A DNA stretch of 64,000 nt from Laetmonice hystrix (GCA_965235115.1 OZ249444.1:29264001-29328000), one strand, 5' to 3'. Numbered from the stretch's first letter, positions 17,496 through 49,260 are shown. Made by a program: numbers and translations. The notes: generated by a model not told the origin, from the letters alone.

Positions 17496-17522
17496 CTACA
17501 GGAGGAGGCAGTATATACTCAC

Positions 17523-18339: not shown

Positions 18340-18549
18340 CTAGGAAGGCGACGTTGAGTATATTTTCCCGGGGTAGAACCTTTTTGTTGTAGGACGACAT
18401 ACTGGACGTCCGGCCTAGGTCCGTCACTGACAAGTGTTGAGTTTTGGTAGTTGTCGTGGTGGCCGCCATGTGTTTGTGTGGCGGACTGACTGCGTTCAGA
18501 ATAATTGTCAGAGCAAACGATGTGTCGATCGGACGAATCTTCGGACAGT
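18340..18549 (-). CDS. unc80: UNC80 exon (DCPKIRPIDTSFALTIILNAV...LNVAFL), phase 1->1
   Basis: ctctgtctggcag| and G|gtaagc; acceptor duplicated in the upstream 64-bp array. Confidence 0.88.
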
Positions 18550-19558
18550 CTGCCAGACAGAGAGAAATATATCAACGCGGGTCAGTGTTATACGACTCCA
18601 CTCCCGGCACTGACAGACAGAGAGAAATATATCAACGCGGGTCAGTGTTACACGACTTCACTCTCGCTATAGTCTGCCAGACAGAGAGAAATATATCAAC
18701 GCGGATCAGTGTTATACGACTCCACTCCCGGTACAGTCTGCCAGACAGAGAGAAATATATCAACGCGGGTCAGTGTTATACGACTCCACTCCCGGCACTG
18801 ACAGACAGAGAGAAATATATCAACGCGGGTCAGTGTTACACGACTTCACTCCCGGTACAGTCTGCCGGACAGAGAGAAATATATCAACGCGGGTCAGTGT
18901 TATACGACTCCACTCTCGCTATAGTCTGCCAGACAGAGAGAAATATATCAACGCGGGTCAGTGTTACACGACTTCACTCCCGGTACAGTCTGCCGGACAG
19001 AGAGAAATATATCAACGCGGGTCAGTGTTACACGACTTCACTCCCGGTACAGTCTGCTGGACAGAGAGAAATATATCAACGCGGGTCAGTGTTATACGAC
19101 TCCACTCCCGGCACTGACAGACAGAGAGAAATATATCAACGCAGGTCAGTGTTATACGACTCCACTCCCGGTACAGTCTGCCAGACAGAGAGAAATATAT
19201 CAACGCGGGTCAGTGTTATACGACTCCACTCCCGCTATAGTCTGTCAGACAGAGAGAAATATATCAACGCAGGTCAGTGTTATACGACTCCACTCCCGGT
19301 ACAGTCTGCCAGACAGAGAGAAATATATCAACGCGGGTCAGTGTTATACGACTCCACTCTCGCTATAGTCTGACAGACAGAGAGAAATATATCAACGCGG
19401 GTCAGTGTTATACGACTCCACTCCCGGTACAGTCTGCCAGACAGAGAGAAATATATCAACGCGGGTCAGTGTTATACGACTCCACTCTCGCTATAGTCTG
19501 ACAGACAGAGAGAAATATATCAACGCGGGTCAGTGTTATACGACTCCACTCCCGGTAC
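18545..19558. repeat. About 64-bp minisatellite (about 16 copies) containing the acceptor and first bases of exon 18340-18549
   Basis: Gene-strand unit ...gatatatttctctctgtctggcag|actgt... Confidence 0.95.
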
Positions 19559-19784
19559 TCAACTATTCACGTTGACATTCAGGATGACCTTGTAAAATGG
19601 TATTTGCTTGGAGGTATATGGACGCGGAAGACATCTTACTTTGGTTCCTATCCTGATACAAATCCCCGACTCTTTCAATGACCCAGATCCACGTTTTCAA
19701 GGACTACCGATCAACTAGAAGGTCATTCAAAGTCGGACCCCAGTCTGGAGTAAGTTTTGATTGGACAGAGAATGACAAACCTAC

Positions 19785-19908
19785 CTCTGCGTCCGCTGCC
19801 CATCCGAATACAGAGCGGTAGAATGAGGTTCACTAACATGTTAACTGTTTTCTCCTGTGTCGGGAACACCGACATTCCTCCACAGATCTGCTCCAGTGAG
19901 TACTGGTC
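19785..19908 (-). CDS. unc80: UNC80 exon (DQYSLEQICGG...LILPLCIRMGSGRR), phase 0->1
   Basis: ttcctccag| and G|gtaggt. Confidence 0.9.
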
Positions 19909-20376
19909 CTGGAGGAAGAACATCAATCCAGTTTTTTTAGGATTCTAGTTTATCATTTTGGAAGATCTTCCTTCAGAAGTACGCGATCAAGAAACAACTC
20001 AGAAAAGAAAAATGCCTGGTTCAGGGCTCTGTATAGATCTGCGTGTTATAACATGCCTGTAAAGGTTTTATAATTTGTTCAGAAATTTTTCATCTCATTA
20101 CATGATTTAGTTTTTTCCCATGTGCGACCGCAGTGCCATACGGTGGTTTTCATGTGACGCGTGTGAGACCAATGACGTCAATGTTATTTTAATGGCAGGA
20201 TGCCATTTTGGCCTCCGCTAGGTAATAAATCGTTTTGGTTTTAAAATATCTGGATACAAGATGAATCTCTGGAGAAATCCCGCCACACCAATTGGCACTG
20301 TGATCAAAACATGGACCTAATAGAAGACGCCCTTTATGTTAACGCTGTGTGGTACTGTCTTAAAGGTAGAACTGAC

Positions 20377-20556
20377 CCCTAGCGCCTGCATCTGCATGGC
20401 GGTAACCTTGACGACAGCTGAACAGAAGGCAGGGGGCGGGGCAATCCTGGAGAGGGGCGTGTCTAGACGGTGAGGTGGCGCCGCCTGGAGGTTGTCTCCC
20501 AGTGTCACGTGACTGTCGTCGGCCAGCACGATATTCAGACACACGGTGATCAGTGT
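20377..20556 (-). CDS. unc80: UNC80 exon (TLITVCLNIVL...FCSAVVKVTAMQMQALG), phase 0->0
   Basis: gcccacag| and GGG|gtcagt. Confidence 0.9.
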
Positions 20557-20860
20557 CTGTGGGCCAGAGATAACATTTTCAATTTTACATTTTACCAGTT
20601 TACCGTATTTTACCAGACAGTTTACCGTATTTTACCCGTATTTTCAGATATGTAGGTATGTTCCATGAAAGTTTACAAGCACTAAGTATATTTATCAAAT
20701 ACCCATGGGGCTTAGATTATTATAATTATAATGAGGATGTTTTCCTCTGACCCGCCAATTGTCACAACTCAATCTGAAGGTGCATGTAAGAAAACTTAGA
20801 GAGGGTGTTACAGATGCCACCAGGTGGCGCTGTGATCAAAACCTGGGCCTATTTGCTTAC

Positions 20861-20956
20861 CTTGAGATGGGGGAGATGTGCTATGTAAGCAAACTTGGAG
20901 AGAGTGTTATAGATGGCCTTGAGGAGGTTAGACGCCGCGTCCCAGTCCAGATGGCG
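20861..20956 (-). CDS. unc80: UNC80 exon (RHLDWDAASNLLKAIY...AHLPHLK), phase 0->0
   Basis: gttaacag| and AAG|gtaagc. Confidence 0.92.
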
Positions 20957-21195
20957 CTGTTAACGACGTCACAATATTAGCTCATCACCATAGGCCAGTG
21001 TTGGGGTAAATCTCATAACATATTGGTGAATTTTATTTCTTTCAACTTTTAGAATATGCATTCAATTTTATATTTTAAACGTGACGATACAGAATACATA
21101 TATTTTTCACACTCACAGCCGGTGAAACACTTGCCCCATAGCTACGAGTCGTGATATTCAAGGACATTATAATATAAGATTTTTAAAAATCTCAC

Positions 21196-21319
21196 CCTGA
21201 GAGCCGGTTTTTTGTATATCTTAGAGAACAGTCTCTCCATACGCCGCAGGATGAGGTTAAGGGCTGGGCGGACTGACTCCTGCGACCAGTCTGTGGCTGG
21301 TAACATCTCCAGGGTGTAC
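21196..21319 (-). CDS. unc80: UNC80 exon (YTLEMLPATDWSQESVRPALNLILRR...PALR), phase 2->0
   Basis: tttggcag| and AGG|gtgaga. Confidence 0.92.
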
Positions 21320-21547
21320 CTGCCAAAACCACAGTCATCCAAACCTTACAAACTCTTCTCAGCATCATCTCAACATCAGTGCTCAACATATATTATCACT
21401 TGTATCGAGCTGACAGTAACTAAAAATTGAGAGTACCTAAAAAAGGGGAACTGGGACAATTGGTCCAAGTCCTATACCGTTCGAAGATCTGGCGTCTGGA
21501 GACACACGGTAGCCCATTGAGAGTCAACTGGTTTGGATTCTTGCCCC

Positions 21548-21666
21548 AGACTGAGCCACTGACGGGGTAGGGGTTCTATTGCTACATCCCTTTAGAAGAG
21601 TTGGTTCCACCTATGCCGAGTTACACCCTCACCTCTCCAAGTGGACACACCAAACTCTTCGTACTG
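21548..21666 (+). repeat. Dispersed repeat, diverged copy of 2575-2712
   Basis: See paired feature. Confidence 0.7.
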
Positions 21667-21811
21667 CCCCCTGGGATTTCCATGTTTTTGTAACCCAGAC
21701 CCCAGCTCGACCGGCGCAATGACGCGCTATCACACGGTAGGCCTATCTGGTTAATGTTCAGGGGACACTCCCCCACCCCTCTTTGGGCAGGCTGCGGCCC
21801 TGAATACTCAC

Positions 21812-21891
21812 TTTTGGAGGCCGGGACATCGCATGGTGGCGGGGTCGTATGGCGCCACCTTCAGGAGTGTATGTGCAACATCAGCCAGGCG
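21812..21891 (-). CDS. unc80: UNC80 exon (RLADVAHTLLKVAPYDPATMRCPGLQ), phase 0->2
   Basis: ggtttcag| and AA|gtgagt. Confidence 0.92.
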
Positions 21892-22229
21892 CTGAAACCA
21901 GGGAACATAATTGGTCCAGTAAAACAACACACTTCATGTGTCAAAGTTAACAACACGTAAATAACGATTCTTGTGTCAAAGTTAACAATACTTAAAGAAC
22001 GAATCTTGTGGACTTTAGGTCGTATGCCAATTTGGTGACGTTTTCGTTCTTATACTGGGTCTTGCAAAGGTTACTGTGCAATAATTAACTTTTGGGACAC
22101 CCTGTATTAAACTCATCAAATTCATTGAAAAAGGTGCGCAGACATATTTTTAGTGAAAGGCCACCCAGTGGCACGTGTCATTTGGAACCATTGGTTTAAT
22201 ATATCTATATTTAAAAAGTGTTGCTCTAC

Positions 22230-22443
22230 ATTTTGGGCCTTGGAGTCGAGGAGATCAGGGACTCTGAAGGTAGGATCGGCTACGATTCTGCGCAGTTCAC
22301 GGATCCGGTTGGAGCAGTGTGAGAAAAAGTAAGCCACGATGCAGAGAAGAGAATTCCGGGGTCGACGGAAGTCATTGAGCGTCGACTCAGCCTCGTCTTC
22401 AGCAGTGACGTGGCGGCGGCGGGGGAGTCCCTCCTCCATGTAC
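22230..22443 (-). CDS. unc80: UNC80 exon (YMEEGLPR...DFRRPRNSLLCIVAYFF...LLDSKAQN), phase 2->0
   Basis: gttccaaag| and AAT|gtagag. Confidence 0.9.
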
Positions 22444-22704
22444 CTTTGGAACAATGGGAAAATAGTCAACACGAATAGGCGATATTAAAGTGGGGAACAC
22501 ACCTGACGCGATGCTACGTGATGCTATGCGATGCTATGCGATGCGACGCGATTATGAAAAGCTCCTAATGGTTTTCAGCGAGTGTGAACACACTTGAAGA
22601 TCCAGCGACGTGCAGCTTCAGGTGTGTTAACACTCACTGAAAACCCCCGCATATAGCCGTTTGAAATCTTTGCCTCAGCTGACTGTTGTGACGTCATGAC
22701 CTAC

Positions 22705-22824
22705 TTTATCTCCGACTGTTCCTCATAGATGCCATGACCTTGAGGAGAATGGTTGCTATGATTAGCTGTCGCCTTCACGTTGCTGTTAACTGTCTCTAGG
22801 TGGCGCTGTGGTCCGCTGAAATTC
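22705..22824 (-). CDS. unc80: UNC80 exon (NFSGPQRHLE...EQSEIK), phase 2->2
   Basis: ttccaacag| and AA|gtaggt. Confidence 0.85.
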
Positions 22825-23000
22825 CTGTTGGAATGAGACACGACAGACTCCTGGTATTGCGGCATGTTTCTCAAGTGTTTAGTAAAAATCCAATGGGATC
22901 CAACTATACACATGTAAACAGCTTGATATTCTTTCAATGTATGCTGCTTGGCAACTCAGATATAGCTAAAGACAAGAGCTAAAACTAGGACCCTGCCCAC

Positions 23001-23158
23001 CTTGTGAGTGACTCACAGCTGGAGACGAGAGCCCTCATGGACACGGCCAGGTTAGCAATGGCACAGAGTTCCTCCCGAGCGGCGGTGGCGCTGTCTTTCT
23101 TGGTCGTCGCTTCCTTAACGTGCTGGAGGTAGTGGGGTAGGATCGCCTCCAAGATGGT
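23001..23158 (-). CDS. unc80: UNC80 exon (TILEAILPHYLQH...CESLTR), phase 0->2
   Basis: gttgacag| and AG|gtgggc. Confidence 0.9.
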
Positions 23159-23383
23159 CTGTCAACGGAAGAGTGGTTATTCTACATGACAATATACCAA
23201 ACCCAGTTGGGGCTAGGGGTAGGATTAGGGCCAGAGCTAGAGAAGATGACTTTGGGGTAGGTTTAGACAGAGTCCAGGGGTTTTTTGCTTACTCAAATCC
23301 TTCTTTCAGACCCCCCCCCCCCAAGTCCTAGTTCCCAAATCAGGATATTCTAGAAACCCCTGATTAATTCCACATTGACTGAC

Positions 23384-23602
23384 CAGCATTTGCATGCCCC
23401 GTACGGAGTCACAGGCGTAGGCGACGACGGTGATACACATATTGATTGCGTCTAGAAGCTGGAAGGTGTCTGAATCTTCAATGTAACAGAAATCCATGGC
23501 AGTAAGAGGTTTCTCTCCCTCTACCATGTCCAGGATCTCCAGGTTATCCGGGCAGTCCTCCTCCAGGGCTAGCAGTAGGTTAAACAGTGCTTGGGTCGAA
23601 AC
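23384..23602 (-). CDS. unc80: UNC80 exon (VSTQALFNLLLALE...VRGMQML), phase 0->0
   Basis: cgttccag| and CTG|gtcagt. Confidence 0.92.
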
Positions 23603-23931
23603 CTGGAACGAGGGCGATGAATTAATGTAATGGAGTATACATACAGGACCTAACCACTGGGGGGCGTCTCACAACCACGGGTATCATTTCATGTGTTAAA
23701 ATTCCCATTGAAGATGGTTCTGAAACGTACCCCTTGTTTTCAACAGACTGTCACTCACTCTTCCATATCCAAACTGATTTCTACAATCTTTTATAAAATA
23801 CCTGACAGCCTTTCTGTGAGTCGATATGTGTTACTTATTTACACTAATGCAGGCCATAGTGAAAAAGAGTAGGCACTGAAAGTTGTAAGCTCTCAGTCAG
23901 GTTAACAAATGTTGTCCCTCCAAGGTTTTAC

Positions 23932-23997
23932 CTTGCTGAAGTCGAAGATGTTGGGATCTTCACACATATTCAGGATGGGTGCCAGACTCCCAAACAT
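23932..23997 (-). CDS. unc80: UNC80 exon (MFGSLAPILNMCEDPNIFDFSK), phase 0->0
   Basis: cctttcag| and AAG|gtaaaa. Confidence 0.88.
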
Positions 23998-24127
23998 CTG
24001 AAAGGCGGAGAGTAAAAAATCAGGATTATGTTGTACTGTCGACAATGATGGGAAACACCCTGTTATACTGAACACGGGGGGGGGGGGGGGGTAGGTACAT
24101 CAGTAATCTTCCTGTAAAATACCGTCT

Positions 24128-27100
24128 CATAAAGGGTTTACGGTGGGGAGGGTGAGCTGAGAGGTTGTTTACCTGTAACATAAAGGGTTTACGGTGGAGT
24201 GGGAGGGTGAGCTGAGGGAGAGGTTGTTTACCTGTAACATAAAGGGTTTACGGTGGAGTGGGAGGGTGAGCTGAGAGAGAGGTTGTTTACCTGTAACATA
24301 AAGGGTTTACGGTGGAGTGGGTGAGCTGAGAGAGAGGTTGTTTACCTGTAACATAAAGGGTTTACGGTGGAGTGGGAGGGTGAGCTGAGGGAGAGGTTGT
24401 TTACCTGTAACATAAAGGGTTTACGGTGGAGTGGGAGGGTGAGCTGAGAGAGAGGTTGTTTACCTGTAACATAAAGGGTTTACGGTGGAGTGGGAGGGTG
24501 AGCTGAGAGAGAGGTTGTTTACCTGTAACATAAAGGGTTTACGGTGGAGTGGGAGGGTGAGCTGAGAGAGATGTTGTTTACCTGTAACATAAAGGGTTTA
24601 CGGTGGAGTGGGAGGGTGAGCTGAGAGAGAGGTTGTTTACCTGTAACATAAAGGGTTTACGGTGGGGAGGGTGAGCTGAGGGAGAGGTTGTTTACCTGTA
24701 ACATAAAGGGTTTACGGTGGAGTGGGAGGGTGAGCTGAGAGAGAGGTTGTTTACCATAACATAAAGGGTTTACGGTGGGGAGGGTGAGCTGAGAGAGAGG
24801 TTGTTTACCTGTAACATAAAGGGTTTACGGTGGAGTGGGTGAGCTGAGAGAGAGGTTGTTTACCTGTAACATAAAGGGTTTACGGTGGAGTGGGAGGGTG
24901 AGCTGAGGGAGAGGTTGTTTACCTGTAACATAAAGGGTTTACGGTGGAGTGGGAGGGTGAGCTGAGAGAGAGGTTGTTTACCTGTAACATAAAGGGTTTA
25001 CGGTGGAGTGGGTGAGCTGAGAGAGAGGTTGTTTACCTGTAACATAAAGGGTTTACGGTGGAGTGGGTGAGCTGAGAGAGAGGTTGTTTACCTGTAACAT
25101 AAAGGGTTTACGGTGGAGTGGGAGTGTGAGCTGAGGGAGAGGTTGTTTACCTGTAACATAAAGGGTTTACGGTGGAGTGGGAGGGTGAGCTGAAAGGTTG
25201 TTTACCTGTAACATAAAGGGTTTACGGTGGAGTGGGAGGGTGAGCTGAGGGAGAGGTTGTTTACCTGTAACATAAAGGGTTTACGGTGGAGTGGGTGAGC
25301 TGAGAGAGAGGTTGTTTACCTGTAACATAAAGGGTTTACGGTGGAGTGGGAGGGTGAGCTGAGAGAGAGGTTGTTTACCATAACATAAAGGGTTTACGGT
25401 GGAGTGGGTGAGCTGAGAGAGAGGTTGTTTACCTGTAACATAAAGGGTTTACGGTGGAGTGGGTGAGCTGAGGGAGAGGTTGTTTACCTGTAACATAAAG
25501 GGTTTACGGTGGGGAGGGTGAGCTGAGGGAGAGGTTGTTTACCATAACATAAAGGGTTTACGCTGGAGTGGGTGAGCTGAAAGAGAGGTTGTTTACCTGT
25601 AACATAAAGGGTTTACGGTGGAGTGGGTGAGCTGAAAGAGAGGTTGTTTACCTGTAACATAAAGGGTTTATGGTGGAGTGGGAGGGTGAGCTGAGGGAGA
25701 GGTTGTTTACCTGTAACATAAAGGGTTTACGGTGGAGTGGGTGAGCTGAGGGAGAGGTTGTTTACCTGTAACATAAAGGGTTTACGGTGGGGAGGGTGAG
25801 CTGAGAGAGAGGTTGTTTACCTGTAACATAAAGGGTTTACGGTGGGGAGGGTGAGCTGAGAGAGAGGTTGTTTACCTGTAACATAAAGGGTTTACGGTGA
25901 AGTGGGAGGGTGAGCTGAGGGAGAGGTTGTTTACCTGTAACATAAAGGGTTTACGGTGGAGTGGGTGAGCTGAGAGAGAGGTTGTTTACCTGTAACATAA
26001 AGGGTTTACGGTGGAGTGGGTGAGCTGAGGGAGAGGTTGTTTACCTGTAACATAAAGGGTTTACGGTGGAGTGGGTGAGCTGAGGGAGAGGTTGTTTACC
26101 TGTAACATAAAGGGTTTACGGTGGAGTGGGAGGGTGAGCTGAGGGAGAGGTTGTTTACCTGTAACATAAAGGGTTTACGGTGGAGTGGGAGGGTGAGCTG
26201 AGGGAGAGGTTGTTTACCTGTAACATAAAGGGTTTACGGTGGAGTGGGAGGGTGAGCTGAGAGAGAGGTTGTTTACCTGTAACATAAAGGGTTTACGGTG
26301 GGGAGGGTGAGCTGAAAGAGAGGTTGTTTACCTGTAACATAAAGGGTTTACGGTGGAGTGGGAGGGTGAGCTGAGAGAGAGGTTGTTTACCTGTAACATA
26401 AAGGGTTTACGGTGGAGTGGGAGGGTGAGCTGAGAGAGAGGTTGTTTACCTGTAACATAAAGTGTTTACGGTGGAGTGGGAGGGTGAGCTGAGGGAGAGG
26501 TTGTTTACCTGTAACATAAAGGGTTTACGGTGGAGTGGGAGGGTGAGCTGAGGGAGAGGTTGTTTACCTGTAACATAAAGGGTTTACGGTGGAGTGGGTG
26601 AGCTGAGAGAGAGGTTGTTTACCTGTAACATAAAGGGTTTACGGTGGAGTGGGAGGGTGAGCTGAGGGAGAGGTTGTTTACCTGTAACATAAAGGGTTTA
26701 CGGTGGGGAGGGTGAGCTGAGGGAGAGGTTGTTTACCTGTAACATAAAGGGTTTACGGTGGAGTGGGTGAGCTGAGAGAGAGGTTGTTTACCTGTAACAT
26801 AAAGGGTTTACGGTGGAGTGGGTGAGCTGAGGGAGAGGTTGTTTACCATAACATAAAGGGTTTACGGTGGGGAGGGTGAGCTGAGGGAGAGGTTGTTTAC
26901 CTGTAACATAAAGGGTTTACGGTGGAGTGGGAGGGTGAGCTGAGAGAGAGGTTGTTTACCTGTAACATAAAGGGTTTACGGTGGGGAGGGTGAGCTGAGG
27001 GAGAGGTTGTTTACCTGTAACATAAAGGGTTTACGGTGGAGTGGGTGAGCTGAGGGAGAGGTTGTTTACCTGTAACATAAAGGGTTTACGGTGGAATGGG

Positions 27101-29942
27101 AGGGTGAGCTGAGAGAGAGGTTGTTTACCTGTAACATAAAGGGTTTACGGTGGGGAGGGTGAGCTGAGGGAGAGGTTGTTTACCTGTAACATAAAGGGTT
27201 TACGGTGGAGTGGGTGAGCTGAGGGAGAGGTTGTTTACCTGTAACATAAAGGGTTTACGGTGGAGTGGGAGGGTGAGCTGAGAGAGAGGTTGTTTACCTG
27301 TAACATAAAGGGTTTACGGTGCGGAGGGTGAGCTGAGAGAGAGGTTGTTTACCTGTAACATAAAGGGTTTACGGTGGAGTGGGAGGGTGAGCTGAGAGAG
27401 AGGTTGTTTACCTGTAACATAAAGGGTTTACGGTGGGGAGGGTGAGCTGAGAGAGAGGTTGTTTACCTGTAACATAAAGGGTTTACGGTGGGGAGGGTGA
27501 GCTGAGAGAGAGGTTGTTTACCTGTAACATAAAGGGTTTACGGTGGGGAGGGTGAGCTGAAAGAGAGGTTGTTTACCTGTAACATAAAGGGTTTACGGTG
27601 GAGTGGGAGGGTGAGCTGAGAGAGAGGTTGTTTACCTGTAACATAAAGGGTTTACGGTGGGGAGGGTGAGCTGAGGGAGAGGTTGTTTACCTGTAACATA
27701 AAGGGTTTACGGTGGAGTGGGAGGGTGAGCTGAGAGAGAGGTTGTTTACCTGTAACATAAAGGGTTTACGGTGGAGTGGGAGGGTGAGCTGAGAGAGAGG
27801 TTGTTTACCTGTAACATAAAGGGTTTACGGTGGAGTGGGTGAGCTGAGAGAGAGGTTGTTTACCTGTAACATAAAGGGTTTACGGTGGGGAGGGTGAGCT
27901 GAGAGAGAGGTTGTTTACCTGTAACATAAAGGGTTTACGGTGGAGTGGGAGGGTGAGCTGAGAAAGAGGTTGTTTACCTGTAACATAAAGGGTTTACGGT
28001 GCGGAGGGTGAGCTGAGAGAGAGGTTGTTTACCTGTAACATAAAGGGTTTACGGTGGAGTGGGTGAGCTGAGAGAGAGGTTGTTTACCTGTAACATAAAG
28101 GGTTTACGGTGGAGTGGGAGGGTGAGCTGAGAGAGAGGTTGTTTACCTGTAACATAAAGGGTTTACGGTGGAGTGGGAGGGTGAGCTGAGAGAGGTTGTT
28201 TACCTGTAACATAAAGGGTTTACGGTGGGGAGGGTGAGCTGAGGGAGAGGTTGTTTACCTGTAACATAAAGGGTTTACGGTGGAGTGGGAGGGTGAGCTG
28301 AGAGAGAGGTTGTTTACCTGTAACATAAAGGGTTTACGGTGGAGTGGGTGAGCTGAGAGAGAGGTTGTTTACCTGTAACATAAAGGGTTTACGGTGGAGT
28401 GGGAGGGTGAGCTGAGAGAGAGGTTGTTTACCTGTAACATAAAGGGTTTACGGTGGAGTGGGAGGGTGAGCTGAGGGAGAGGTTGTTTACCTGTAACATA
28501 AAGGGTTTACGGTGGAGTGGGAGGGTGAGCTGAGGGAGAGGTTGTTTACCTGTAACATAAAGGGTTTACGGTGGAGTGGGAGGGTGAGCTGAGAGAGAGG
28601 TTGTTTACCTGTAACATAAAGGGTTTACGGTGGGGAGGGTGAGCTGAGGGAGAGGTTGTTTACCTGTAACATAAAGGGTTTACGGTGGAGTGGGTGAGCT
28701 GAGGGAGAGGTTGTTTACCTGTAACATAAAGGGTTTACGGTGGAGTGGGAGGGTGAGCTGAGAGAGAGGTTGTTTACCTGTAACATAAAGGGTTTACGGT
28801 GCGGAGGGTGAGCTGAGAGAGAGGTTGTTTACCTGTAACATAAAGGGTTTACGGTGGAGTGGGAGGGTGAGCTGAGAGAGAGGTTGTTTACCTGTAACAT
28901 AAAGGGTTTACGGTGGAGTGGGAGGGTGAGCTGAGAGAGAGGTTGTTTACCTGTAACATAAAGGGTTTACGGTGGAGTGGGAGGGTGAGCTGAGGGAGAG
29001 GTTGTTTACCATAACATAAAGGGTTTACGGTGGAGTGGGAGGGTGAGCTGAGAGAGAGGTTGTTTACCTGTAACATAAAGGGTTTACGGTGGAGTGGGAG
29101 GGTGAGCTGAGAGAGAGGTTGTTTACCTGTAACATAAAGGGTTTACGGTGGAGTGGGAGGGTGAGCTGAGAGAGAGGTTGTTTACCTGTAACATAAAGGG
29201 TTTACGGTGGAGTGGGAGGGTGAGCTGAGGGAGAGGTTGTTTACCTGTAACATAAAGGGTTTACGGTGGGGAGGGTGAGCTGAGAGAGGTTGTTTACCTG
29301 TAACATAAAGGGTTTACGGTGGAGTGGGTGAGCTGAGAGAGGTTGTTTACCTGTAACATAAAGGGTTTACGGTGGGGAGGGTGAGCTGAGGGAGAGGTTG
29401 TTTACCTGTAACATAAAGGGTTTACGGTGGAGTGGGTGAGCTGAGAGAGAGGTTGTTTACCTGTAACATAAAGGGTTTACGGTGGAGTGGGAGGGTGAGC
29501 TGAGAGAGAGGTTGTTTACCTGTAACATAAAGGGTTTACGGTGGAGTGGGTGAGCTGAGAGAGAGGTTGTTTACCTGTAACATAAAGGGTTTACGGTGGA
29601 GTGGGAGGGTGAGCTGAGAGAGAGGTTGTTTACCTGTAACATAAAGGGTTTACGGTGGAGTGGGTGAGCTGGGAGAGAGGTTGTTTACCTGTAACATAAA
29701 GGGTTTACGGTGGAGTGGGAGGGTGAGCTGAGAGAGAGGTTGTTTACCTGTAACATAAAGGGTTTACAGTGGGGAGGGTGAGCTGAGAGAGAGGTTGTTT
29801 ACCTGTAACATAAAGGGTTTACGGTGGAGTGGGTGAGCTGAGAGAGAGGTTGTTTACCTGTAACATAAAGGGTTTACGGTGGAATGGGAGGGTGAGCTGA
29901 GAGAGAGGTTGTTTACCTGTAACATAAAGGGTTTACGGTGCA
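24128..29942. repeat. 54/55/59-bp minisatellite, roughly 100 copies (estimated from length), each with 24 nt of exon plus donor
   Basis: Gene-strand unit CACCGTAAACCCTTTATGTTACAG|gtaaacaacctctctctcagctcaccctcccactc. Confidence 0.98.
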
Positions 29943-30063
29943 GGGTGTAGAACTGTCTGCAGGCAAACTCGATGGCCTCACAGAGGACGAGGTTCGCTTG
30001 ATGGTTGGAATACACCTTGATCATGGTAGGCATGATGTAGAGGAACCCAGAAGTTGCAAACAC
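29917..30063 (-). CDS. unc80: UNC80 exon (VFATSGFLYIMPTMIKVYSNHQ...FYTLHRKPFMLQ), phase 0->0
   Basis: gatacag| and CAG|gtaaac; last 24 nt plus donor duplicated about 100 times downstream. Confidence 0.95.
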
Positions 30064-38421: not shown

Positions 38422-38516
38422 TACCGGATAGATGAACACTGCGAGAGTCAGTGTCCGTGTGCGTATGCTATGCTCCCAAAAAACAAAACGATATACGAAA
38501 ACGGCACTGATCTTAC

Positions 38517-38522
38517 CAGGGC
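38517..38522 (-). CDS. unc80: Candidate 6-nt micro-exon GCCCTG (adds Pro-Gly), phase 1->1
   Basis: ttttcctcaccctacccaccgtccacag|GCCCTG|gtaaga; frame-preserving. Confidence 0.5.
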
Positions 38523-39641: not shown

Positions 39642-39782
39642 CTTCAAAGATGGTGGGCCTTGGGATGAACATGCTACCATTTCTCCATGACATGTTACGT
39701 AATTGAACGTTAGATTGCCGATTGATAGGAGCGACGGACACTCGTCGGGCAGCCAAGTTGAGGTTGATTTCTTCTTGCGCGG
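39642..39782 (-). CDS. unc80: UNC80 exon (AAQEEINLNLAARRVSVAP...PTIFE), phase 1->1
   Basis: long pyrimidine tract ...ccctctgtag| and G|gtaccg. Confidence 0.85.
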
Positions 39783-39865
39783 CTACAGAGGGTGAGACGG
39801 AAAGGACATGCAACGTTAACCGGGTACGTACGGCACCAATCACCTTCACTGACGTACTTCCTCAC

Positions 39866-40015
39866 TGAGGGATGACCTTGACTGCGGGTACTCGACCTTG
39901 GCACCGCTACCACCACCACCACCACCGCCCAACATCCACGGACCACACAGCTCATACTTCCTCTCCTCACAACGACAACTGTCCACTTTAGGAACCTTCT
40001 CCGACTTTCTACCAG
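39866..40015 (-). CDS. unc80: Candidate cassette exon with poly-Gly (AGRKSEKV...LGGGGGGGSGAKVEYPQSRSSL), phase 1->1
   Basis: cttatcag| and A|gtgagg; 150 nt open; 83-nt intron to next exon; weak pyrimidine tract. Confidence 0.4.
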
Positions 40016-40456
40016 CTGATAAGAACTTGTTTCCATTATCTTCTACTTTGAAAATTACATTTCCAGAAACTTTCCTTTCCTTTCTGTCCTTTGTGGTGTA
40101 TTTTTCTTACTTTCAAAAATCGTATTTATACAGCATAAAGTTATGTCTTATTTTTATCTTTAGGCCTGAGCTGTGGGGCCCGTTGAGTGTTCCAGAATCG
40201 GTCACAAACACCTCATGCAGGTTACCAGGACACTTGCAAATCATAACATTTACCAGGAAGAAGAGAACTTTAAGTCATAGTGAATCAGACTTGAAACCGG
40301 TTAGAGTCCAAGTGTGGCAAGTGAATGAGAAGATATACAAAGCATAGGTTCTGAACCGAGAAAAAAACCAATAAGGAAGAATTAAGAAGAAAGAAGTTAG
40401 CTCAATGACACAATCACATAATATAGTTAGAGGTTACTTAATAATGTGCCCTTGGT

Positions 40457-40545
40457 CAGGGGGCCGTTCCATAAATTCCCTTTCGCTAAAATTGCCATTG
40501 AATTTCAATGGCACTTTTAGCGGGAATTTATGCAACGGCCCCCTG
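40457..40545. mobile_element. 89-bp near-perfect foldback element (miniature MITE)
   Basis: CAGGGGGCCGTTCCATAAATTCCC...TGCCATTGAA / TTCAATGGCA...GGGAATTTATGCAACGGCCCCCTG. Confidence 0.75.
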
Positions 40546-43336
40546 CAGATTTAATAGAGAGATGAATGTAAAGTTCAATAGAGCAAGGCCACAACAAATT
40601 GATGTTAGTACGATATTCACTCGCATTATAATACAATCATCATATATATATAGATATACCTGGAGATAACGTTATATATATGATGGGCTAATTCATTCAG
40701 AGTTATGACCAAACCAAACTAGTAAACTAGATTTGGTCACCAAACTGAATGGTAAATTGTTTGATAGATTTCACAGGCTCCTCTCAACATAGCTTTCTCA
40801 TCAACGACATTTATAATCATTGACAAACTCAGGGTTTGTATGACTGCTACACACCAGACAAAGCCTGTACCTATAGTCACAATATTTAAAGGTGTATATA
40901 GATTATTGCCGGGCTACAGGCTCCTATCGTATATGCAAGAACCAGGTGCATATATTATACTACCGTACATGTATATATGTCACATATATACATGCGGAAC
41001 ATGACAAATATCGGTACGTCACTCCATCACATGCTGTGGGGAAGACAACAAAAAATAGAGTGTTGCTGCTGACCAGCGAAAAAATATCATCACCCTCGGT
41101 AGGCCCCTATAGAACCAACCTTTCTTGGTTTCTACGGTGAATTCAAATCCGTAAACCAGGTTTCGCTTCAGCAGACTTCATTCAGAAAAACGTTTCTACG
41201 CACAAAATGGTCATTCTGGGTAAATTATCCAATGTCAGACAAAAAAGGCAGCAAAGTTCATTTATTCTATTTGCTGACAGGTAAAAACGGGAAAAATTGT
41301 AGTTTTGAAATGTGAAAAAAGCCATGTATTCAAAACTAAGACGCACTCTCTATAAATTGACACAACAGACGGACACCAGGCATGAAAAACGGTTTATAAT
41401 TTGGAAATTCAAAAAAGTACACCATATATCTATATAATATATACCCTGTATATTATAGATACAATATATTCATATAAACGATAGTGTCTACATGAATATA
41501 CACGTGTAAATGAGTACGGAGTTGATCAACAGTGTTTTCAGTATACTATACAAAAACTAGTACGTGCTAAAAGCTCGTCTAGAATATATACTGTGATGAG
41601 TAATAGAATACAGGTCACCCCCAATGGTTTATACCTGAAGAGTAGGGTGATCGTTCAGGTAACGAGGGTACAGGGATCGTAACATTACCCCCACCTTCAT
41701 GATGGCCAAGGTCAGGGGGTTGGTTGGTTGTTTGTTGGTTGGTTGGTAGGGATAACACGCGGCAGAAACAGAAAAGGTAAAAAATAACAAATGAGCCTGG
41801 TCATACCATGAATATCATGAACAATACAGCGCAAAATAGACAAAAAAATGTATGTGTACCACACAAGCAAAGAATGGCCACGTTTATCGTAAACTTTATA
41901 TTATATTACCATATTATCACGTTCAAGTGACCAAGCCAACAAAAATAATAATTTGGCAATACAAGCCAAGCTGCGTTCCTTTACTTCAACAGGCAAGACT
42001 TGGTTTGACTAGTAAAGTGCAACGGCAAAGCAGCATTCACCATTGATATAATCAGCAAAGCGTTTCAAAGGAGACCATTCAAGCACTGAGCAACTTCCTG
42101 GTCACCACAGGCAAGTAATAAAATAATGTAAAACCAATCGTGATGGCGGTAAGCTGAGCCGAAAACAATGGAAAACTTCAACATTCCACAAAAACACAGA
42201 CAAGCCAGACTGCAGGCCAAAATACAGGTCAAGGGGTCACGGAGTCACGTGACTACGCTGAGAGGATCATCGCCTTGTTTTACTATAACTCCTTCCATCT
42301 CCAACACGTCACGTGGTCGACACAGCATTCTCATCTCATGCACCATTTTAACTCAAAAGATTCTTTTGGCATTCCCTCTTTAATTGATTTTAATTCCTTC
42401 CTTTTTTTATTCTAATATCTGGTAAGATTATTTTCAACGACTACATGTATTTTATTATCTGATAGGTTCTTAACAGACCTTTTGAATATTTTCAATCCTT
42501 CACATCAACTGTTACTAAATATTTTCTACTGGTTATAGTCCACCACTAAACCAAAATTCCTCCGACCTACTGGATCTAGTAGCCAACTAAACCACATAAC
42601 TTTATGGACTGGTTCTAGTAGACAACTAAAATAGGGTCAGCCCTTCGATATGTCTCTAACAATGCATGCAACCTAAACAAACTTCGCACAAATAGCAAAC
42701 TTGTCAAGTATGGCTTGTTGTTCTCGACATATATGATAACAATATTCATATAACAATGAATAATTAATATGAGAACAATTAACATTAAAAGCCTTTGTGT
42801 TAGCATCCCGTATTACGGATTCGGACAGTACTTAAGCACAACCATATTACCATTAGATCCTCGTGAATCAGGGTCTATTGGAATCTGCTGGTTTCAGGTC
42901 ATAACCTCACCAAGGTAGACCCGAGGTAGACTGGTGAACTTTCAGCCAAAGGTGAGATCGAAAAATTCCAAATCCCGACTCTATTCGATCTCTTTACAGT
43001 CCAACTCGAATATAATGGATCTATTTATAAATCCTCTCCATTACATCACGAGCAAGAAAACTTGCGCAACATGTTCTTGAGAAACTGTTAAATAAATGAC
43101 CAACAACGTTATGATTTATATATCAGTTTAAATACTGGGGTAAGTAACGTAAGAAACAACCCTAATCTACAAGTAAAAATATCCTGAGCGAAAGGGAAGG
43201 TTGACAATAGAGAATCATCTATCATCCATGCCAGTCTATTGTTAAGACGTTCCCTAACATCACACCACACGACCCCCGTAGAGCAGGCACACAGGGGTGA
43301 TCAGTAATAATGGCCGTATAACGGTTGCTAAGTTAC

Positions 43337-43523
43337 CTTCCTCATGCTCCTCGCTGGCGTGATGCAGGGCTGGCTCGTACGCCGCCTGATGAGTGACCGG
43401 GATAGCCGTCATGTGAAAGTTCTCCCGCGCCGCCTGGCGGCGATCATCCTCAGCTAATAGCGCTCGGTGGATCATCTCCTGCTGTTGTTTACGTCGGGTT
43501 GTCGTCGCCGTCACGAACGTTTT
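43337..43523 (-). CDS. unc80: UNC80 exon (KTFVTATTT...TAIPVTHQAAYEP...EEHEE), phase 0->1
   Basis: ggcgttag| and G|gtaact. Confidence 0.9.
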
Positions 43524-45594
43524 CTAACGCCACAAAAACATGAACACATCCTGTTAACATCTCTGGGCTAACCCATCTTCAATATTCACAGTTCTAAGAT
43601 TGTCAACCGTATCAAGACTATTCAAGTTGGAATCATCCAATTTGAAAAGAACGATGAAATGCGATATCATTGGGCCTACTCACATAATAACCTCTTCAAA
43701 CAAAGTTTCAGCAATATAAATGAATATCTGTCTGACATTGATGGTAGGCCTATGAGCTTGTGAAGTAGCCTACTTAAGTTTATATACCGGTATTACAAGT
43801 GTTGTCTGTAATGTGGTGCCTGAAGTCATACATGTACCGGAATTGTATTCGCAAACTTTGTTTGGTGTAGTTTATGTATGTTAGTTATATAAATTTGATA
43901 ATTAAGCATTTCATTACCTTTTCCTACAAAATAGTACGAACATCTTTTACAATACTATTACGGACACTCAAACCACAAGGACGTTATGTTATCAACATAT
44001 AACAACCCTATGTACAGCTGAGAGGCCCTAGATATGGCTACATGATATAGGCTACTGTTACTATAATAACTAATTTCATAAACGCACTGAAAATATTATT
44101 CAAACCAAAGTATTGAAGCACTGTATTACAGGCCTACTTATTCTAGTTCCACTTTTGAGCATTCTAACCTTGAGAAGGATAATTTCCCCAGTGGCTAGGC
44201 CTATTGTGATGATATTGTATTGCTGTATGTTATGTATGTCATATCGTTCAAAGATATCTCAGGAGATATAATGATGTCATGGATACAAATACATTTATCA
44301 GATCCGGAACTCATCCTCAAACTGCCCCAACAGAAACCCTGGCGAATATAAACCCTTCTCCCGGTGGCACTTTTAAACCAAACTAGTGATGACCAAAAAC
44401 CTAACAAACCAGCCCCCATATCAAACGCAAACAATATTAATTAAATTAAATATGTTAGTAATCCATGAGGGGACTAGGCCCTTTCCTAGATCGAAAGATT
44501 TTTTAAAAACCGGAAAGGGAAACTTGTAAAATCTGCGTAATAAATGGCTTCATTAGACGTCATTCTGCTGACACCCTGAATACAGGCAAACCAATCTACA
44601 CTGAGATTACAACAGGTGTAAATCTACACGTCGAGACTGCACACCTGAACAACTTTCAAAATTATCAGGAGAAGCAAGAAAATAACAAAATAATGTCGGG
44701 TTAAGTCAGATAAAGCATAAATCAGTTCAGAGAAAAACATCTAAAAAAATCACCATACCTCCTTGGTAATGTCTACACGTAAGGCCGCTCTGACCCTTTC
44801 CCCAGGAAAGGCTGACCCACACATTAAATCCAGTGCAAGACTAAGCTAACACAATAATTACTCTCATTGTGTATTATAGCCAAAGCAGTATTTTGCGTTT
44901 CTGAGCCAAACGTAGTACCATACTTGTGTCAGTACCGCACAGACATCCACCCTTCTTACCAAGTATTCAAACGTGGCTAGTAAAGGTTGCTTCAGGAAGA
45001 CAGAAGTAACAAAAAATGTTAACGAGATCTGTTAAAGTGTTAGATTAACGAATCGAGTCACCCCTTATATAACAGTTATAATACTAAACCTTGCGTTAAT
45101 GTGTTTGTGTCTTACCTAAAATTCAAATTTACTGCTAATATTAAAATGTTAAGTCGTCATAATGGTGACAATGCCAAGATACAAAAAATCTACTTACTAA
45201 AAGATGATTACTTGAAATAAATAATGAGTATTTCGTGATTACAACTTTCGAGGCATAAAAATAAGTCCTTTAAAAATCACCAAAAAAACCCTTGAGGTCA
45301 TGAGATCCACACGCTTTACGCGTGCACCACTGCACGGCGCTGCGATCGCACTGCGCCGCTGTTAATGAGTTTAATAGACACCACTCCGACAGTGACCTAC
45401 AAATTTCTGGTCACTCAAAACGGACGCAGTGGTTTCTGGGAGTCCTTCGAGTGGTAGTTGCATTTGCTTCCTTTTTTCTAATGTGCAATCTTTAGGGGGG
45501 CAGGCCCCCTCTGTCGCCCCCTGATCGACCCGTTGGAAAAACTCATGCCTTTACACCCCAAGGTCAAAGAAGACGTGATGATAGATGACCTTAC

Positions 45595-45802
45595 CGACCC
45601 CTCCTGGTTGATGGTAACCTCCTCCACTTTAGTTTTAAAGTGAGGCATCCATGGCGGGTCGATGACAGTCAGACACGGTAAGCCAATGGTTGGGGACGGC
45701 AGCACAAAGTCAATACTTGGTGGTGGGACCTTGAAGAAGGCGTTAGCACCGTCCTCCATACGGGGCCAAACCTGGTACCGGAACCTCCACAGTACCTGGA
45801 AC
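45595..45802 (-). CDS. unc80: UNC80 exon (FQVLWRFRYQVWPRMEDGA...VTINQEGS), phase 2->0
   Basis: cctcaccag| and TCG|gtaagg; strongly conserved. Confidence 0.93.
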
Positions 45803-46071
45803 CTGGTGAGGAATGGGTGAATGTAAATCTGTACCAGTCTGAATGTAAATCGGTCACGTTTGAAATGTAAATCACCCCCCTTTGAAAGGTAAATCAGTTA
45901 TAGTTGAATTGTAAATCAACATATTAATATCATTTGGCTTCTAGATATATGTTGCTTGCCTCCCCCACCCCAAAAAAAGTTTTCTGCATGGCTTTAGTTT
46001 TTCAACATGCCGATCCGTTTGCCCCCCCCCCTTCAACTCCTCAAAAAAAGTGAAATCCCCCAGATTCTGAC

Positions 46072-46180
46072 CTTAGAATGGCGTTGATTCTTTGGTTGAC
46101 TTCTTGGTGCTGAAGTTCTCGGAACATCACCTCCTGTACTTGGTCAGCTGCCTTCACTGACGACAAGATGTATACCGTCG
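46072..46180 (-). CDS. unc80: UNC80 exon (ATVYILSSVK...QRINAILR), phase 1->2
   Basis: gtgatcag| and AG|gtcaga. Confidence 0.9.
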
Positions 46181-46774
46181 CTGATCACAACAAACAAACA
46201 TTTCATAATCTGTACTCACGGCACATTGCAAGTATTTATCTCACCCTGAAAGTAAACCGGCAAAAAAATCCTAATATTCTAAATTCACAGTTGTATGATG
46301 CTTGGGAGTCTTTAATTGTAGAATGCTGCAATTAACTAATTACTTCATTGGTCAGAACTACTACTCATTCGTTACTAACCCCCAGAGTATTACCCCATAT
46401 CACCGAGTTTATTCTGAACCCCCCCCCCCAACCTCACCCTCAATGGTGTGAAATGAACCCCCACCCAGGAACACAGTACCGCCAGATGTCGCTGCCACAA
46501 AGCCTCCATTCTCATGCTCACATGCAACAGCGACATCTACTGAGAGAAAACGACATTAACCACAGACAACCTGGAGTGCGATTTAATATCAAAAGATATC
46601 TTTGCCAAAGATATTTATCCAAAGATGTCTTTAACAAAGATGTCTTTGGACTAGTGCAATCTGGATGGGGAGAGAGCGAGTGTTTCAATAAAAACCTCGC
46701 ACCTGGCTCCAGCGAGGTTTTCAGATATCTTTGGGCTTTATTGAAATGCACCCTTGGGCTGAGTTCACACTTAC

Positions 46775-46913
46775 CTGCTGCAGCAGCCAGTTCCTGGTCA
46801 CTCTCCAGTAGTAGTTCCCACGCCACGGGTAACATATCAATAAAACTTTCCTCTGACAGAATCGGGGCGGCCTTGGTGATTATAGACATCACACAGTGAC
46901 TCAAGTTCTGCAC
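46775..46913 (-). CDS. unc80: UNC80 exon (VQNLSHCVMSIITKAAP...WELLLESDQELAAAA), phase 0->1
   Basis: ttctatag| and G|gtaagt. Confidence 0.92.
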
Positions 46914-47578
46914 CTATAGAATGGCAATAACACAAAATTGGTTATAACCGGACATTTCAATAGGAGCCTTACCGGGGGTACCAAAAATAATCCCGAAATA
47001 TGATGAGACCCAAACATATCTTTAAACTTTCTAATACCTGATATCGGAGATATATGCTATGTAGACATTGTTTTGCTGATAATTCAGGATACATTGTATT
47101 GAACATTCAACCATGACGCCTGCAATCAATGACCCGCCAGTGACGCCACACCTTACATACATAATACATTAGGGGGGTGGGGTTCTTAGAACTTGCGTAT
47201 ATTCATATAGAGTAGAAGCTATTTTATTAGATGCTTTCGGTAATTTGTGGCCAGTCGGTTTCTGTGAGGCCAATAAACATTCAGTCATTTCTCTGCAGTC
47301 CCTCACTTTGAACAAATAAGGAGTCAATATATAGTTTCTCAGTCGCCCGTGTACAGTCGATGGCCGAATAATAGATGGACACTAAGTTGATTGGTCAGCT
47401 GTAGCTGGTTGTATATAAGAGTTTCTGACACTTTGAAACAACATGGGGGGTTCAGGAGATGAGGACAGATCTCACACATTCACCCCTTCAATCTGCCCTT
47501 ATTCTTTGCCCTCCCACCAATTCTGTTATTATAGCGAATCGCCGCTCTCTGACGTCTAAAAAGAGTTGTCTGACTTAC

Positions 47579-47767
47579 TTGCAGTTTCAGGTATTTCATC
47601 ATTGGTGTTTCATCCTTTGGTTTGGCAGGTTTTTTGGGTTCCTCCTTCTTGCCCTCCAGGGCAGCTGCCAGGCGAGCCCGAGCCAGTGTCACGTCTGTCT
47701 TGATTTTCTCCAGTAGAGGGGTGCTCTCCCGGCGTCTTGTGGGGGACGATGGTTGGAACATACTCTC
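47579..47767 (-). CDS. unc80: UNC80 exon (ESMFQPSS...TPMMKYLKLQ), phase 0->0
   Basis: gattcag| and CAA|gtaagt; first bases duplicated in the upstream 53-bp array. Confidence 0.88.
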
Positions 47768-49260
47768 CTGAATCAAATCATTGTAACTATTGTACACCAT
47801 TACAACACAAACATACTCTCCTCAATCAAATCATTGTAACTATTGTACACCATTAAAACAGAAACATACTCTCCTCAATCAAATCATTGTAACTATTGTA
47901 CACCATTAAAACAGAAACATACTCTCCTCAATTAAATCATCGTAACTATTGTACACCATTACAACAGAAACATACTCTCCTCAATCAAATCATTGTAACT
48001 ATTGTACACCATTACACCAGGAACATACTCTCCTCAATCAAATCATCGTAACTATTGTACACCATTACAACAGGAACATACTCTCCTCAATCAAATCATC
48101 GTAACTATTGTACACCATTACAACAGAAACATACTCTCCTCAATCAAATCATCGTAACTATTGTACACCATTACAACAGGAACATACTCTCCTCAATCAA
48201 ATCATTGTAACTATTGTACACCATTACAACAGGAACATACTCTCCTCAATCAAATCATCGTAACTATTGTACACCATTACAACAGGAACATACTCTCCTC
48301 AATCAAATCATTATAACTATTGTACACCATGACAACAGAAAAATACTCTCCTCAATCAAATCATTGTAACTATTGTACACCATTACAACAGGAACATACT
48401 CTCCTCAATCAAATCATCGTAACTATTGTACACCATTACAACAGGAACATACTCTCCTCAATCAAATCATCGTAACTATTGTACACCATTACAACAGGAA
48501 CATACTCTCCTCAATCAAATCATTGTAACTATTGTACACCATTACAACAGGAACATACTCTCCTCAATCAAATCATCATAACTATTGTACACCATTACAA
48601 CAAAAACATACTCTCCTCAATCAAATCATTGTACTATTGTACACCATTACAACAGGAACATACTCTCCTCAATCAAATCATTGTACTATTGTACACCATT
48701 ACAACAGGAACATACTCTCCTAAATCAAATCGTTGTAACTATTGTACACCATTACAACAGGAACATACTCTCCTCAATCAAATCATCGTAACTATTGTAC
48801 ACCATGACAACAGGAACATACTCTCCTCAATCAAATCATTGTAACTATTGTACACCATGACAACAGGAACATACTCTCCTCAATCAAATCATCGTAACTA
48901 TTGTACACCATTACAACAGGAACATACTCTCCTCAATCAAATCGTTGTAACTATTGTACACCATTACAACAGGAACATACTCTCCTCAATCAAATCATTG
49001 TAACTATTGTACACCATTACAACAGGAACATACTCCCCTCAATCAAATCATTGTAACTATTGTACACCATTACAACAGGAACATACTCTCCTCAATCAAA
49101 TCGTTGTAACTATTGTACACCATTACAACAGGAACATACTCCCCTCAATCAAATCATTGTAACTATTGTACACCATTACAACAGAAACACTCTCCTCAAT
49201 CAAATCATTGTAACTATTGTACACCATTAAAACAGGAACATACTCTCCTCAATCAACTAT
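47758..49260. repeat. 53-bp minisatellite (about 28 copies) containing the acceptor region and about 13 nt of exon 47579-47767
   Basis: Gene-strand unit ...gatttgattgag GAGAGTATGTTCC tgttgtaa... Confidence 0.96.

Follow-up and report, generated by a model that had tools for sequence, protein, structure and literature searches.

A single gene of Laetmonice hystrix, a homologue of unc80, harbors six large tandem arrays whose repeat units each straddle one of the gene's own exon-intron junctions. The arrays lie in a stretch of 64,000 nt (GCA_965235115.1 OZ249444.1:29264001-29328000), hereafter the window, in which coordinates are counted from the first letter and in which the six arrays (A1 to A6) as well as unc80 are read on the gene (minus) strand. 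The explanation that we prefer, and to which we assign a probability of roughly 0.7, is that they are intronic minisatellites of the type known from amphioxus as mirages, which arose from chance duplications spanning a junction in a short intron, were then amplified and are nearly neutral, and that their clustering at splice junctions is mainly geometric.

All six arrays were recovered by Tandem Repeats Finder (TRF) as head-to-tail repeats (period 46-111 nt, copy number 9-102, matches 82-96%; Table 1). An earlier note on this DNA had described six unrelated arrays, each with a unit straddling an unc80 junction and with a terminal unit overlapping the real exon, and TRF, the exon map and a comparison of the units agree with this description and with the positions it gave. 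When read on the gene strand, each of the six units holds exon sequence (5-57 nt), a splice site and part of the adjoining intron, all of them from unc80 itself. In all six arrays, it is the terminal unit that adjoins the exon, and the remaining copies are intronic: in the donor arrays A2, A3 and A5, the true site is the 5'-most one, and in the acceptor arrays A1, A4 and A6, it is the 3'-most one.

Table 1. Tandem arrays and unc80 exons in the window. A slash marks the exon-intron junction; intron letters at true splice sites are in lower case.
Feature	Position	Strand	Unit and copies	Splice site, extent or source
A1, acceptor array	18545..19558	-	64 nt x 16 (TRF); ~5 nt exon per unit	True 3' splice site in last copy; exon 18549-18340 begins after ...tctggcag/ACTGT
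A2, donor array	24128..29940	-	59 nt (55-nt variant) x 102 (TRF); 5.8 kb, the largest	True 5' splice site in first copy; exon 30063-29917 ends ...HRKPFMLQ, TTACAG/gtaaac
A3, donor array	32548..33565	-	111 nt x 9 (TRF)	True donor in first copy; exon 33607-33509 ends ...LIVHGPDQTGIPSQYPIHE, ACGAG/gtgagt
A4, acceptor array	34614..35203	-	60 nt x 9 (TRF) plus a 33-nt partial unit; 19 nt exon per unit	True acceptor in last copy; exon 34615-34515, ...ttctccag/TGTCTGAAG
A5, donor array	35531..36748	-	~46 nt x 26 (TRF: 35531-36744, 46 nt x 27); ~10 nt exon per unit	True donor in first copy; exon 36878-36738 ends GGCGTCTCAG/gtacta
A6, acceptor array	47755..49263	-	53 nt x 29 (TRF); 11-13 nt exon per unit	True acceptor in last copy; exon 47767-47579, ...gattcag/GAGAGTATGTTCC
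Partial unc80 homologue	15335..63094	-		42 mapped coding exons; first 63094-62932, last mapped 15499-15335
Additional unc80 C-terminal exon	6285-6095	-		Exon map against Lottia UNC80
Array c	7725-9129	-	54 nt x 26	TRF
Array d	9975-10633	-	31 nt x 22	TRF
Array f	15507..15749	-	71 nt x 3.2	TRF and exon map
Array g	16321..17496	-	28 nt x 41	TRF and exon map
Array o	51915..52565	-	32/190-nt periods	Ends ~130 nt upstream of the acceptor at 51786
Array p	59018..59373	-	36 nt x 10	In a 5.2-kb intron, 365 nt from the donor
Array r	63201..64000	-	69/207-nt periods	Cut by the window edge; ends ~106 nt upstream of the acceptor at 63094

The intronic copies are decoys, some intact and some weakened. A unit of A2 consists of 24 nt of exon (the HRKPFMLQ codons), gtaaac and 35 nt of intron, and among its 101 decoys 96 read identically CAG/GTAAAC and five ATG/GTAAAC. 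In A3, 57 nt of exon (LIVHGPDQTGIPSQYPIHE) are followed by gtgagt and 54 nt of intron, all eight decoys are identical (GAG/GTGAGT) and a 4-nt microhomology (CTGA) is present at the distal end of the array. The A5 unit contains a G-run, and its decoys retain GT in 25 of 25 cases, mostly as CAG/GTACTG as compared with CAG/GTACTA at the real site. On the acceptor side, a polypyrimidine tract is followed in the A1 unit by CAG and some 5 nt of exon, and every one of its 15 decoys retains CAG together with a CTGAC branch-like motif. The eight interior units of A4 end in ...ttctgcaa/ and lack the AG, CCAG being confined to the real site and two edge copies, while the decoys of A6 read ttGAG, a weak acceptor type, in 27 cases and ttTAG in one, against ttCAG at the real site. 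A4 and A5 occupy opposite ends of one and the same intron. Over the six arrays this amounts to about 187 decoy junction copies, some 179 of which retain GT or AG, so the abundance of decoy sites in the pre-mRNA that the earlier note had pointed out is real. The arrays also show higher-order periods (59/114, 64/316 and 46/85 nt) and distinct edge copies.

An all-against-all comparison of 14 array units revealed that those of A1 to A6 are mutually unrelated. A shared core motif or common element was considered and rejected: CTCTCTCAG occurs 69 times but is confined to A2 and A3, and the 9-mer is not significant over all pairs. A dispersed or transposon-borne, introner-like repeat was likewise rejected, as the units carry their own neighboring exon sequence and significant cross-similarity exists only between arrays o and r, which are described below. 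A search of the window for transposable-element-like open reading frames (ORFs) of at least 140 aa, including those for transposase or reverse transcriptase, returned none.

The assignment of array ends to splice junctions depends on the exon map, which was obtained by tblastn with full-length Lottia UNC80 (P0021) and subsequent refinement by splice site and phase. In the tblastn search, 37 colinear high-scoring segment pairs (HSPs) extend between residue 1015 of the Lottia protein (63.1 kb) and residue 2990 (16.1 kb), and one exon ORF matches residues 1329-1369 of human UNC80 (PDB 7w7g, 7wji, 7sx3). When the 42 exons are spliced together, a frame of 2,095 codons with 0 stops results, as compared with 92 and 120 stops in the other two frames. 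The product aligns as a single HSP of 2,030 aa with UNC80 from Lineus, Haliotis and Lottia (55-56% identity; 59% for Owenia), and the Branchiostoma protein (P0063) is 40% identical over 1,767 residues, compared with 55-59% for the spiralians. Because the spliced frame is open throughout and the product aligns with UNC80 from end to end, the exon map is reliable and nucleotide-accurate at the relevant junctions. The gene extends past both ends of the mapped region. A maximum likelihood tree was calculated for the window product and 24 chosen UNC80 proteins (11 from molluscs, two from annelids, two from nemerteans, four from arthropods and one each from Lingula, Priapulus, a crinoid, Branchiostoma and a crocodile), the remaining matches being left out. 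In this tree, the window protein is sister to that of the annelid Dimorphilus with a Shimodaira-Hasegawa-like approximate likelihood ratio test (SH-aLRT) support of 100, within a spiralian clade. An amphioxus origin of the window, which had been considered in view of the mirages of that group, is rejected by this placement and by the low identity to the Branchiostoma protein.

Orthologous introns in a relative bear on the origin of the arrays. The earlier note had suggested such a comparison with related species and had regarded the units as seeded from existing exon-intron junctions, and the latter view was borne out. In the relative (locus L001, European Nucleotide Archive (ENA) analysis ERZ26052287; 85% identical over a single aligned exon pair), the introns at all six positions are short and free of arrays (about 100, 266 (common to A4 and A5), 109, 86 and 260 nt). 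The exon ends contained in the units are conserved both there and in Lottia: the exon next to A2 ends with FYTIHRKPFMLQ/gt in L001, that next to A3 has a conserved end in L001 and in locus L006, and the examples from the relative also include ...IPSQFPIHE/gt, ...EDGVS, VNEIARKVIW... and DGPKIRQ.... Since the exon ends are conserved and the orthologous introns of the relative are short and array-free, the arrays are young and specific to the lineage, and they stem locally from junctions that already existed. The reverse order of events, in which the repeats themselves would have made the exon ends (exonisation), is ruled out by the conservation of these ends in L001, in a second species (L002) and in Lottia. 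Intron gain by tandem duplication after the Rogers model was rejected as well, because introns without arrays exist at all six positions in the relative. In L002 (positions 7649-7870; GCA_029979845.1, contig JARPNL010002263.1), the intron that hosts A2 is absent and ...HREPFMLQ is joined directly to MFGSIAPILN..., so that this intron position has been gained or lost within the group. The A2 intron nevertheless predates its array because L001 and L006 carry an array-free intron of 86 nt, even though L002 has none.

The unc80 gene of the relative contains arrays of its own in other introns: a 12-mer that begins 13 nt past a donor, a 51-mer that ends 6 nt before an exon, a second 51-mer that fills an intron of otherwise about 83 nt, and another 12-mer that begins 34 nt past the donor of a further intron. 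The gene is represented by two haplotig-like contigs (L001/L004 versus L005/L006, ENA ERZ26052287), both of which contain arrays, and the copy numbers of these non-straddling arrays differ strongly between them (125 versus 16, 36 versus about 20, and 8 versus 1). A 51-nt segment, located next to an acceptor, is present in eight copies in one haplotig and in a single copy in the other; the single copy is the unexpanded allele and shows the exact pre-expansion sequence of one array. The relative thus shows ordinary minisatellite birth and turnover. A second copy of the locus from the window species was sought by means of junction ORFs, and that search returned two other species only.

The course of events that we envisage starts from a single tandem duplication of 46-111 bp that by chance would have spanned a splice junction at a time when the intron was still short (roughly 80-450 nt). 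Because of the anatomy of the arrays, one such duplication would leave one intact, exon-contiguous junction and add one intronic decoy. Unequal exchange or replication slippage would then have amplified the duplicate to 9-102 copies, a mechanism that is suggested by the higher-order periods, the distinct edge copies and the CTGA microhomology of A3. Only the exon-contiguous copy, i.e., the 5'-most in donor arrays and the 3'-most in acceptor arrays, would serve as the working splice site, all others being intronic pseudo-sites, and the arrays would persist as nearly neutral elements. In runs of identical donors, the most upstream one would be used, as we extrapolate from IVS7 of human F7, so that downstream decoys would be harmless. 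Acceptor decoys lie upstream of the true site and would either be crippled (loss of AG in A4, GAG in A6) or, as in A1, give rise to transcripts with premature stops that are presumably degraded.

The consequences of decoy use were derived from the exon map, and how the gene is actually spliced is our inference throughout. Use of the nearest decoy would add 60 (A1), 59 (A2), 116 (A3), 46 (A5) or 53 nt (A6) and lead to a premature stop in each case, after 12 codons in A1 and after two codons in A6; the nearest decoy unit of A3 is a 116-nt variant and shifts the frame. A4 is the exception, since its 33-nt partial unit would result in an in-frame insertion of 11 residues. The two sides of the intron differ: decoys are intact in three of three donor arrays (134 pseudo-sites with intact GT in A2, A3 and A5), whereas they are weakened in two of three acceptor arrays (A4 without AG, A6 with GAG). 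By analogy, this asymmetry would fit the upstream-donor rule established for F7 IVS7 (PMC1557585), and the disarmed decoys of A4 and A6 are expected if an acceptor array, whose decoys would otherwise be complete 3' splice sites upstream of the true one, could expand only when its founding decoy was already weak. A1, with its intact decoys, is the exception, and unproductive transcripts would most likely come from this array.

Whether the arrays are concentrated at junctions beyond expectation was assessed after collapsing each array to one unit and scoring the 12 arrays uncut by the window edge as straddling a junction or as wholly intronic. Six of the 12 straddle. With units placed uniformly over all collapsed introns of the window (null i), 1.2-1.3 straddlers are expected and the probability of finding at least six is 4e-4 to 7e-4. 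Conditioning on the host intron (null ii) raises the expectation to 2.4-2.5 (P = 0.0075-0.01). When the lengths of the relative's orthologous introns are taken as the pre-expansion state (null iii), 4.3-4.5 straddlers are expected and the observed number is unremarkable (P = 0.17-0.21). The apparent preference for junctions thus depends on the null model chosen. Collapsed host introns measure 58-476 nt (A6: 1,548 nt) and those of the relative about 86-266 nt, and a duplication of 46-111 nt in introns that short has a 25-100% chance of overlapping a junction. Under null iii, the 111-nt unit of A3 exceeds the whole 109-nt intron, which leaves straddling as the only option, and the 59-nt unit of A2 in an 86-nt intron has a straddling chance of about 0.8. 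On our reading the clustering is mainly geometric, because a large share of viable duplications of 50-110 bp in short introns must overlap a junction. Among the four arrays of the relative, none straddles, as compared with about 1.2 expected from a calculation by hand, which is compatible with null iii. The earlier note had left a choice between a bias in repeat birth and preferential tolerance of junction duplications; this choice is not forced, as the host introns were short before expansion and no special bias is required. Two large introns, 36879-43336 (6.5 kb) and 6286-15334 (9.0 kb), dominate the present-day null model, and the former contains neither a tandem array nor a long ORF.

Several points weigh against this interpretation. 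Six straddlers do exceed the expectation derived from present-day collapsed introns under nulls i and ii, and null iii takes as a proxy for the ancestral state the intron lengths of a relative that is about 85% identical at one exon pair. Per base pair, arrays are over-represented in short introns, which make up 33% of intronic bp and host 8 of 13 arrays (P = 0.03), and the exon share of the unit is skewed low (mean 0.30, P = 0.04). These last two features are not predicted by a purely geometric model, and a low exon share is what selection against exon-rich decoys would give. In addition, correct splicing of the array-bearing introns is an assumption and the copy numbers rest on the assembly. 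The sample comprises one gene, in a window that was picked after the pattern had been noticed.

The likeliest of the rival explanations is a mutational bias, with duplication or expansion starting at exon-intron junctions more often than their share of positions would predict. Possible causes are pausing of RNA polymerase II or R-loops at splice sites, damage or repair coupled to the spliceosome, and nucleosome phasing at exon edges. Apart from the excess of straddlers over the 1.2-2.5 expected from present-day introns and the enrichment of arrays in short introns, such a bias would account for the proximity of non-straddling arrays to splice sites (array g ends 3 nt and array f 8 nt from the AG) and for the ends of the relative's arrays at +13, +10, -6 and -22. 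The excess is gone, however, once the relative's intron lengths are used (P about 0.2), none of the relative's four arrays includes exon sequence although all of them abut splice sites, just as crowding in introns of 80-190 nt gives, the units have no sequence feature in common, and the single gene was selected when the pattern was already known. A junction-specific bias is possible, yet the data do not require one because the excess vanishes with short ancestral introns, and we consider it rather unlikely. A broader version appears to us quite unlikely. It holds that in this lineage splice junctions themselves promote the birth or expansion of minisatellites, by way of R-loops, repair, or pausing associated with transcription or the spliceosome at the edges of exons, and that large arrays like A2 measurably shape U1 recruitment and unc80 isoform output. 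If it were true, mirage-type arrays would form a genome-wide class that is generated at junctions and not just tolerated there.

It is very unlikely, in our view, that the arrays have been retained for an action on unc80 RNA processing. Several routes could be imagined: runs of pseudo-donors could recruit U1 small nuclear ribonucleoprotein and thereby boost the upstream donor or suppress premature polyadenylation, the CAG/GT units of A2 and A5 could act as recursive or 'silent' splice points, and use of decoys could tune unc80 output via nonsense-mediated decay. All 134 pseudo-donors of the donor arrays do keep an intact GT, A2 offers 97 AGGT sites in pyrimidine-rich ...TTACAG/GTAAAC units so that a splice between two copies would regenerate the same junction, and nearly every nearest-decoy product contains a premature stop. 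On the other hand, the arrays are missing from the orthologous introns of the relative, the units are homogenised as in ordinary minisatellites, and comparable arrays of the relative are strongly polymorphic in copy number between haplotigs, which argues for fast neutral turnover and not for conservation.

An assembly artefact, in which wrongly joined repetitive reads would have produced the arrays or raised their copy numbers, is highly improbable: the copy numbers do come from the assembly, a draft genome of amphioxus is reported to contain one aberrantly assembled globin mirage (PMC3087553) and a stretch of Ns (53414-53563) is present in the window, but the arrays show structured internal variation with the higher-order periods and distinct edge copies given above, the open reading frame is intact across six independent arrays, and similar arrays occur in both haplotigs of the relative's assembly.

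The arrays of the window belong to a kind of repeat that has been described before, and here the earlier note, which knew of no such phenomenon, has to be corrected. The term 'mirages' was introduced for tandem repeats lying across exon-intron boundaries of amphioxus Adh3 (Canestro et al. 2002, Nucleic Acids Research, as cited in PMC3087553 and PMC3902484). In amphioxus globin genes (BflGb6 and BflGb9), they are reported to reside at 5' and 3' boundaries, to be polymorphic in length and to leave splicing normal; the authors also considered that the phenomenon might be general in cephalochordates and might be connected with the gain of introns through duplication of AGGT (PMC3087553); further mirages are present in the genes for troponin C and PGBD5 (PMC3902484). 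The window arrays share with them the nature of minisatellite tandem duplications spanning a boundary, the occurrence on both donor and acceptor sides, the presence of AG/GT in many units, locus-specific units and an overlapping range of unit sizes (10-160 bp in amphioxus, 46-111 bp in the window). In each structural feature that could be compared, the locus conforms to what defines a mirage. The host, on the other hand, is an annelid-like spiralian and not a cephalochordate, the copy number reaches 102 as compared with three and six units in two BflGb6 haplotypes, and six arrays fall into one gene, including an intron with a donor and an acceptor array at its two ends.

The same architecture is found in human F7, where the first 37-bp unit of the IVS7 minisatellite (a variable number tandem repeat, VNTR) spans the exon 7 donor. 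Experiments in mammalian cells revealed that splicing there proceeds from the donor farthest upstream, without competition from the pseudo-sites, functional though these are (PMC1557585). A2, A3 and A5 likewise have the authentic donor in the first unit, followed by identical or near-identical pseudo-donors. They differ in scale, as F7 has 5-9 sites and A2 has 102, and F7 lacks an acceptor-side counterpart. In the Rogers model, an intron is gained via tandem duplication of an AGGT-containing segment (for an example see PMC4974935). Common to this model and the window are the addition of splice signals by duplication, an mRNA that is unchanged when the proper pair is used, and CAG/GT junctions in A2 and A5. 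In the window, however, the introns were pre-existing, the duplicated segment includes existing intron, and no new intron or exon can be demonstrated. The units of A2 also place a pyrimidine-rich ...YAG beside GTAAAC. Recursive splice sites, the ratchet points of long introns, have zero-length recursive exons in which a pyrimidine-rich ...YAG is joined to a donor motif. The likeness exists at the level of the motif only, as that of A2 is a duplicated exon end plus donor. The literature that we searched, the coverage of which was incomplete, contained neither a genome-wide survey of junction-spanning arrays nor an example from a spiralian, and no priority is claimed.

Mirage repeats, which have been described from cephalochordates and, as a single human case, from F7, are thus documented in an annelid-like spiralian as well, where six of them crowd into 31 kb of one gene and one has grown to 102 copies. 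As a natural experiment in splice-site choice, the locus offers runs of 8-101 pseudo-donors that match the real donor fully or almost so, 15 complete acceptor decoys in A1 and two disarmed acceptor arrays. Genome scans for overlap between repeat ends and splice sites need a geometric null with collapsed arrays and pre-expansion intron lengths, since plain shuffling of positions inflates enrichment by orders of magnitude in P value. In practice, junction arrays can also mislead gene predictors and the mapping of splices from short reads.

Further arrays ending near an acceptor had been listed in the earlier note, and this holds for those at 15.5, 16.3, 51.9 and 63.2 kb; no exon or acceptor could be mapped near the one at 59.0 kb (array p). 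Array g fills the intron 17522-16317 from 27 nt past the donor to 3 nt before the AG, so that apart from the array some 30 nt of the intron remain, or 58 nt when a single unit is counted in. Its unit contains no exon sequence, and on the gene strand it provides 38 GGTAAG consensus-like donor motifs, none of which stems from the real donor (AGA/gtgagt). Array f does not straddle either and stops 8 or 44 nt before the next exon, two in-phase AGs being possible. The cores of arrays o and r (CCTACTCCCAG and its complement) resemble each other in inverted orientation; at z = 5.4, this pair alone reaches significance among the 14 units, and the two arrays may belong to one dispersed repeat family. 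Arrays c and d are situated deep within the 9-kb intron between exons 15499-15335 and 6285-6095, far from mapped junctions.

Some minor observations concern the gene and its counterpart in the relative. Exon 62552-62136 contains at 62367-62463 (minus strand) an in-frame coding minisatellite with a 9-nt unit that encodes an (HEK)n run, HEKHEKHEKHEK, and falls in a weakly conserved part of UNC80. The 150-N run mentioned above lies in the 2.7-kb intron between exons 54565-54455 and 51786-51599. An (AGAC)n microsatellite at 31389-31468 begins 15 nt past the donor of exon 31560-31483, and the orthologous intron of the relative has a large 51-mer array in its place. The relative's unc80 also contains an intronic fragment of a DDE_3 transposase (L004:11039-11568) and, at the edge of the locus (L004:1-38), an ORF of the long interspersed nuclear element type (endonuclease and RVT_1); no counterpart of either was seen in the window.

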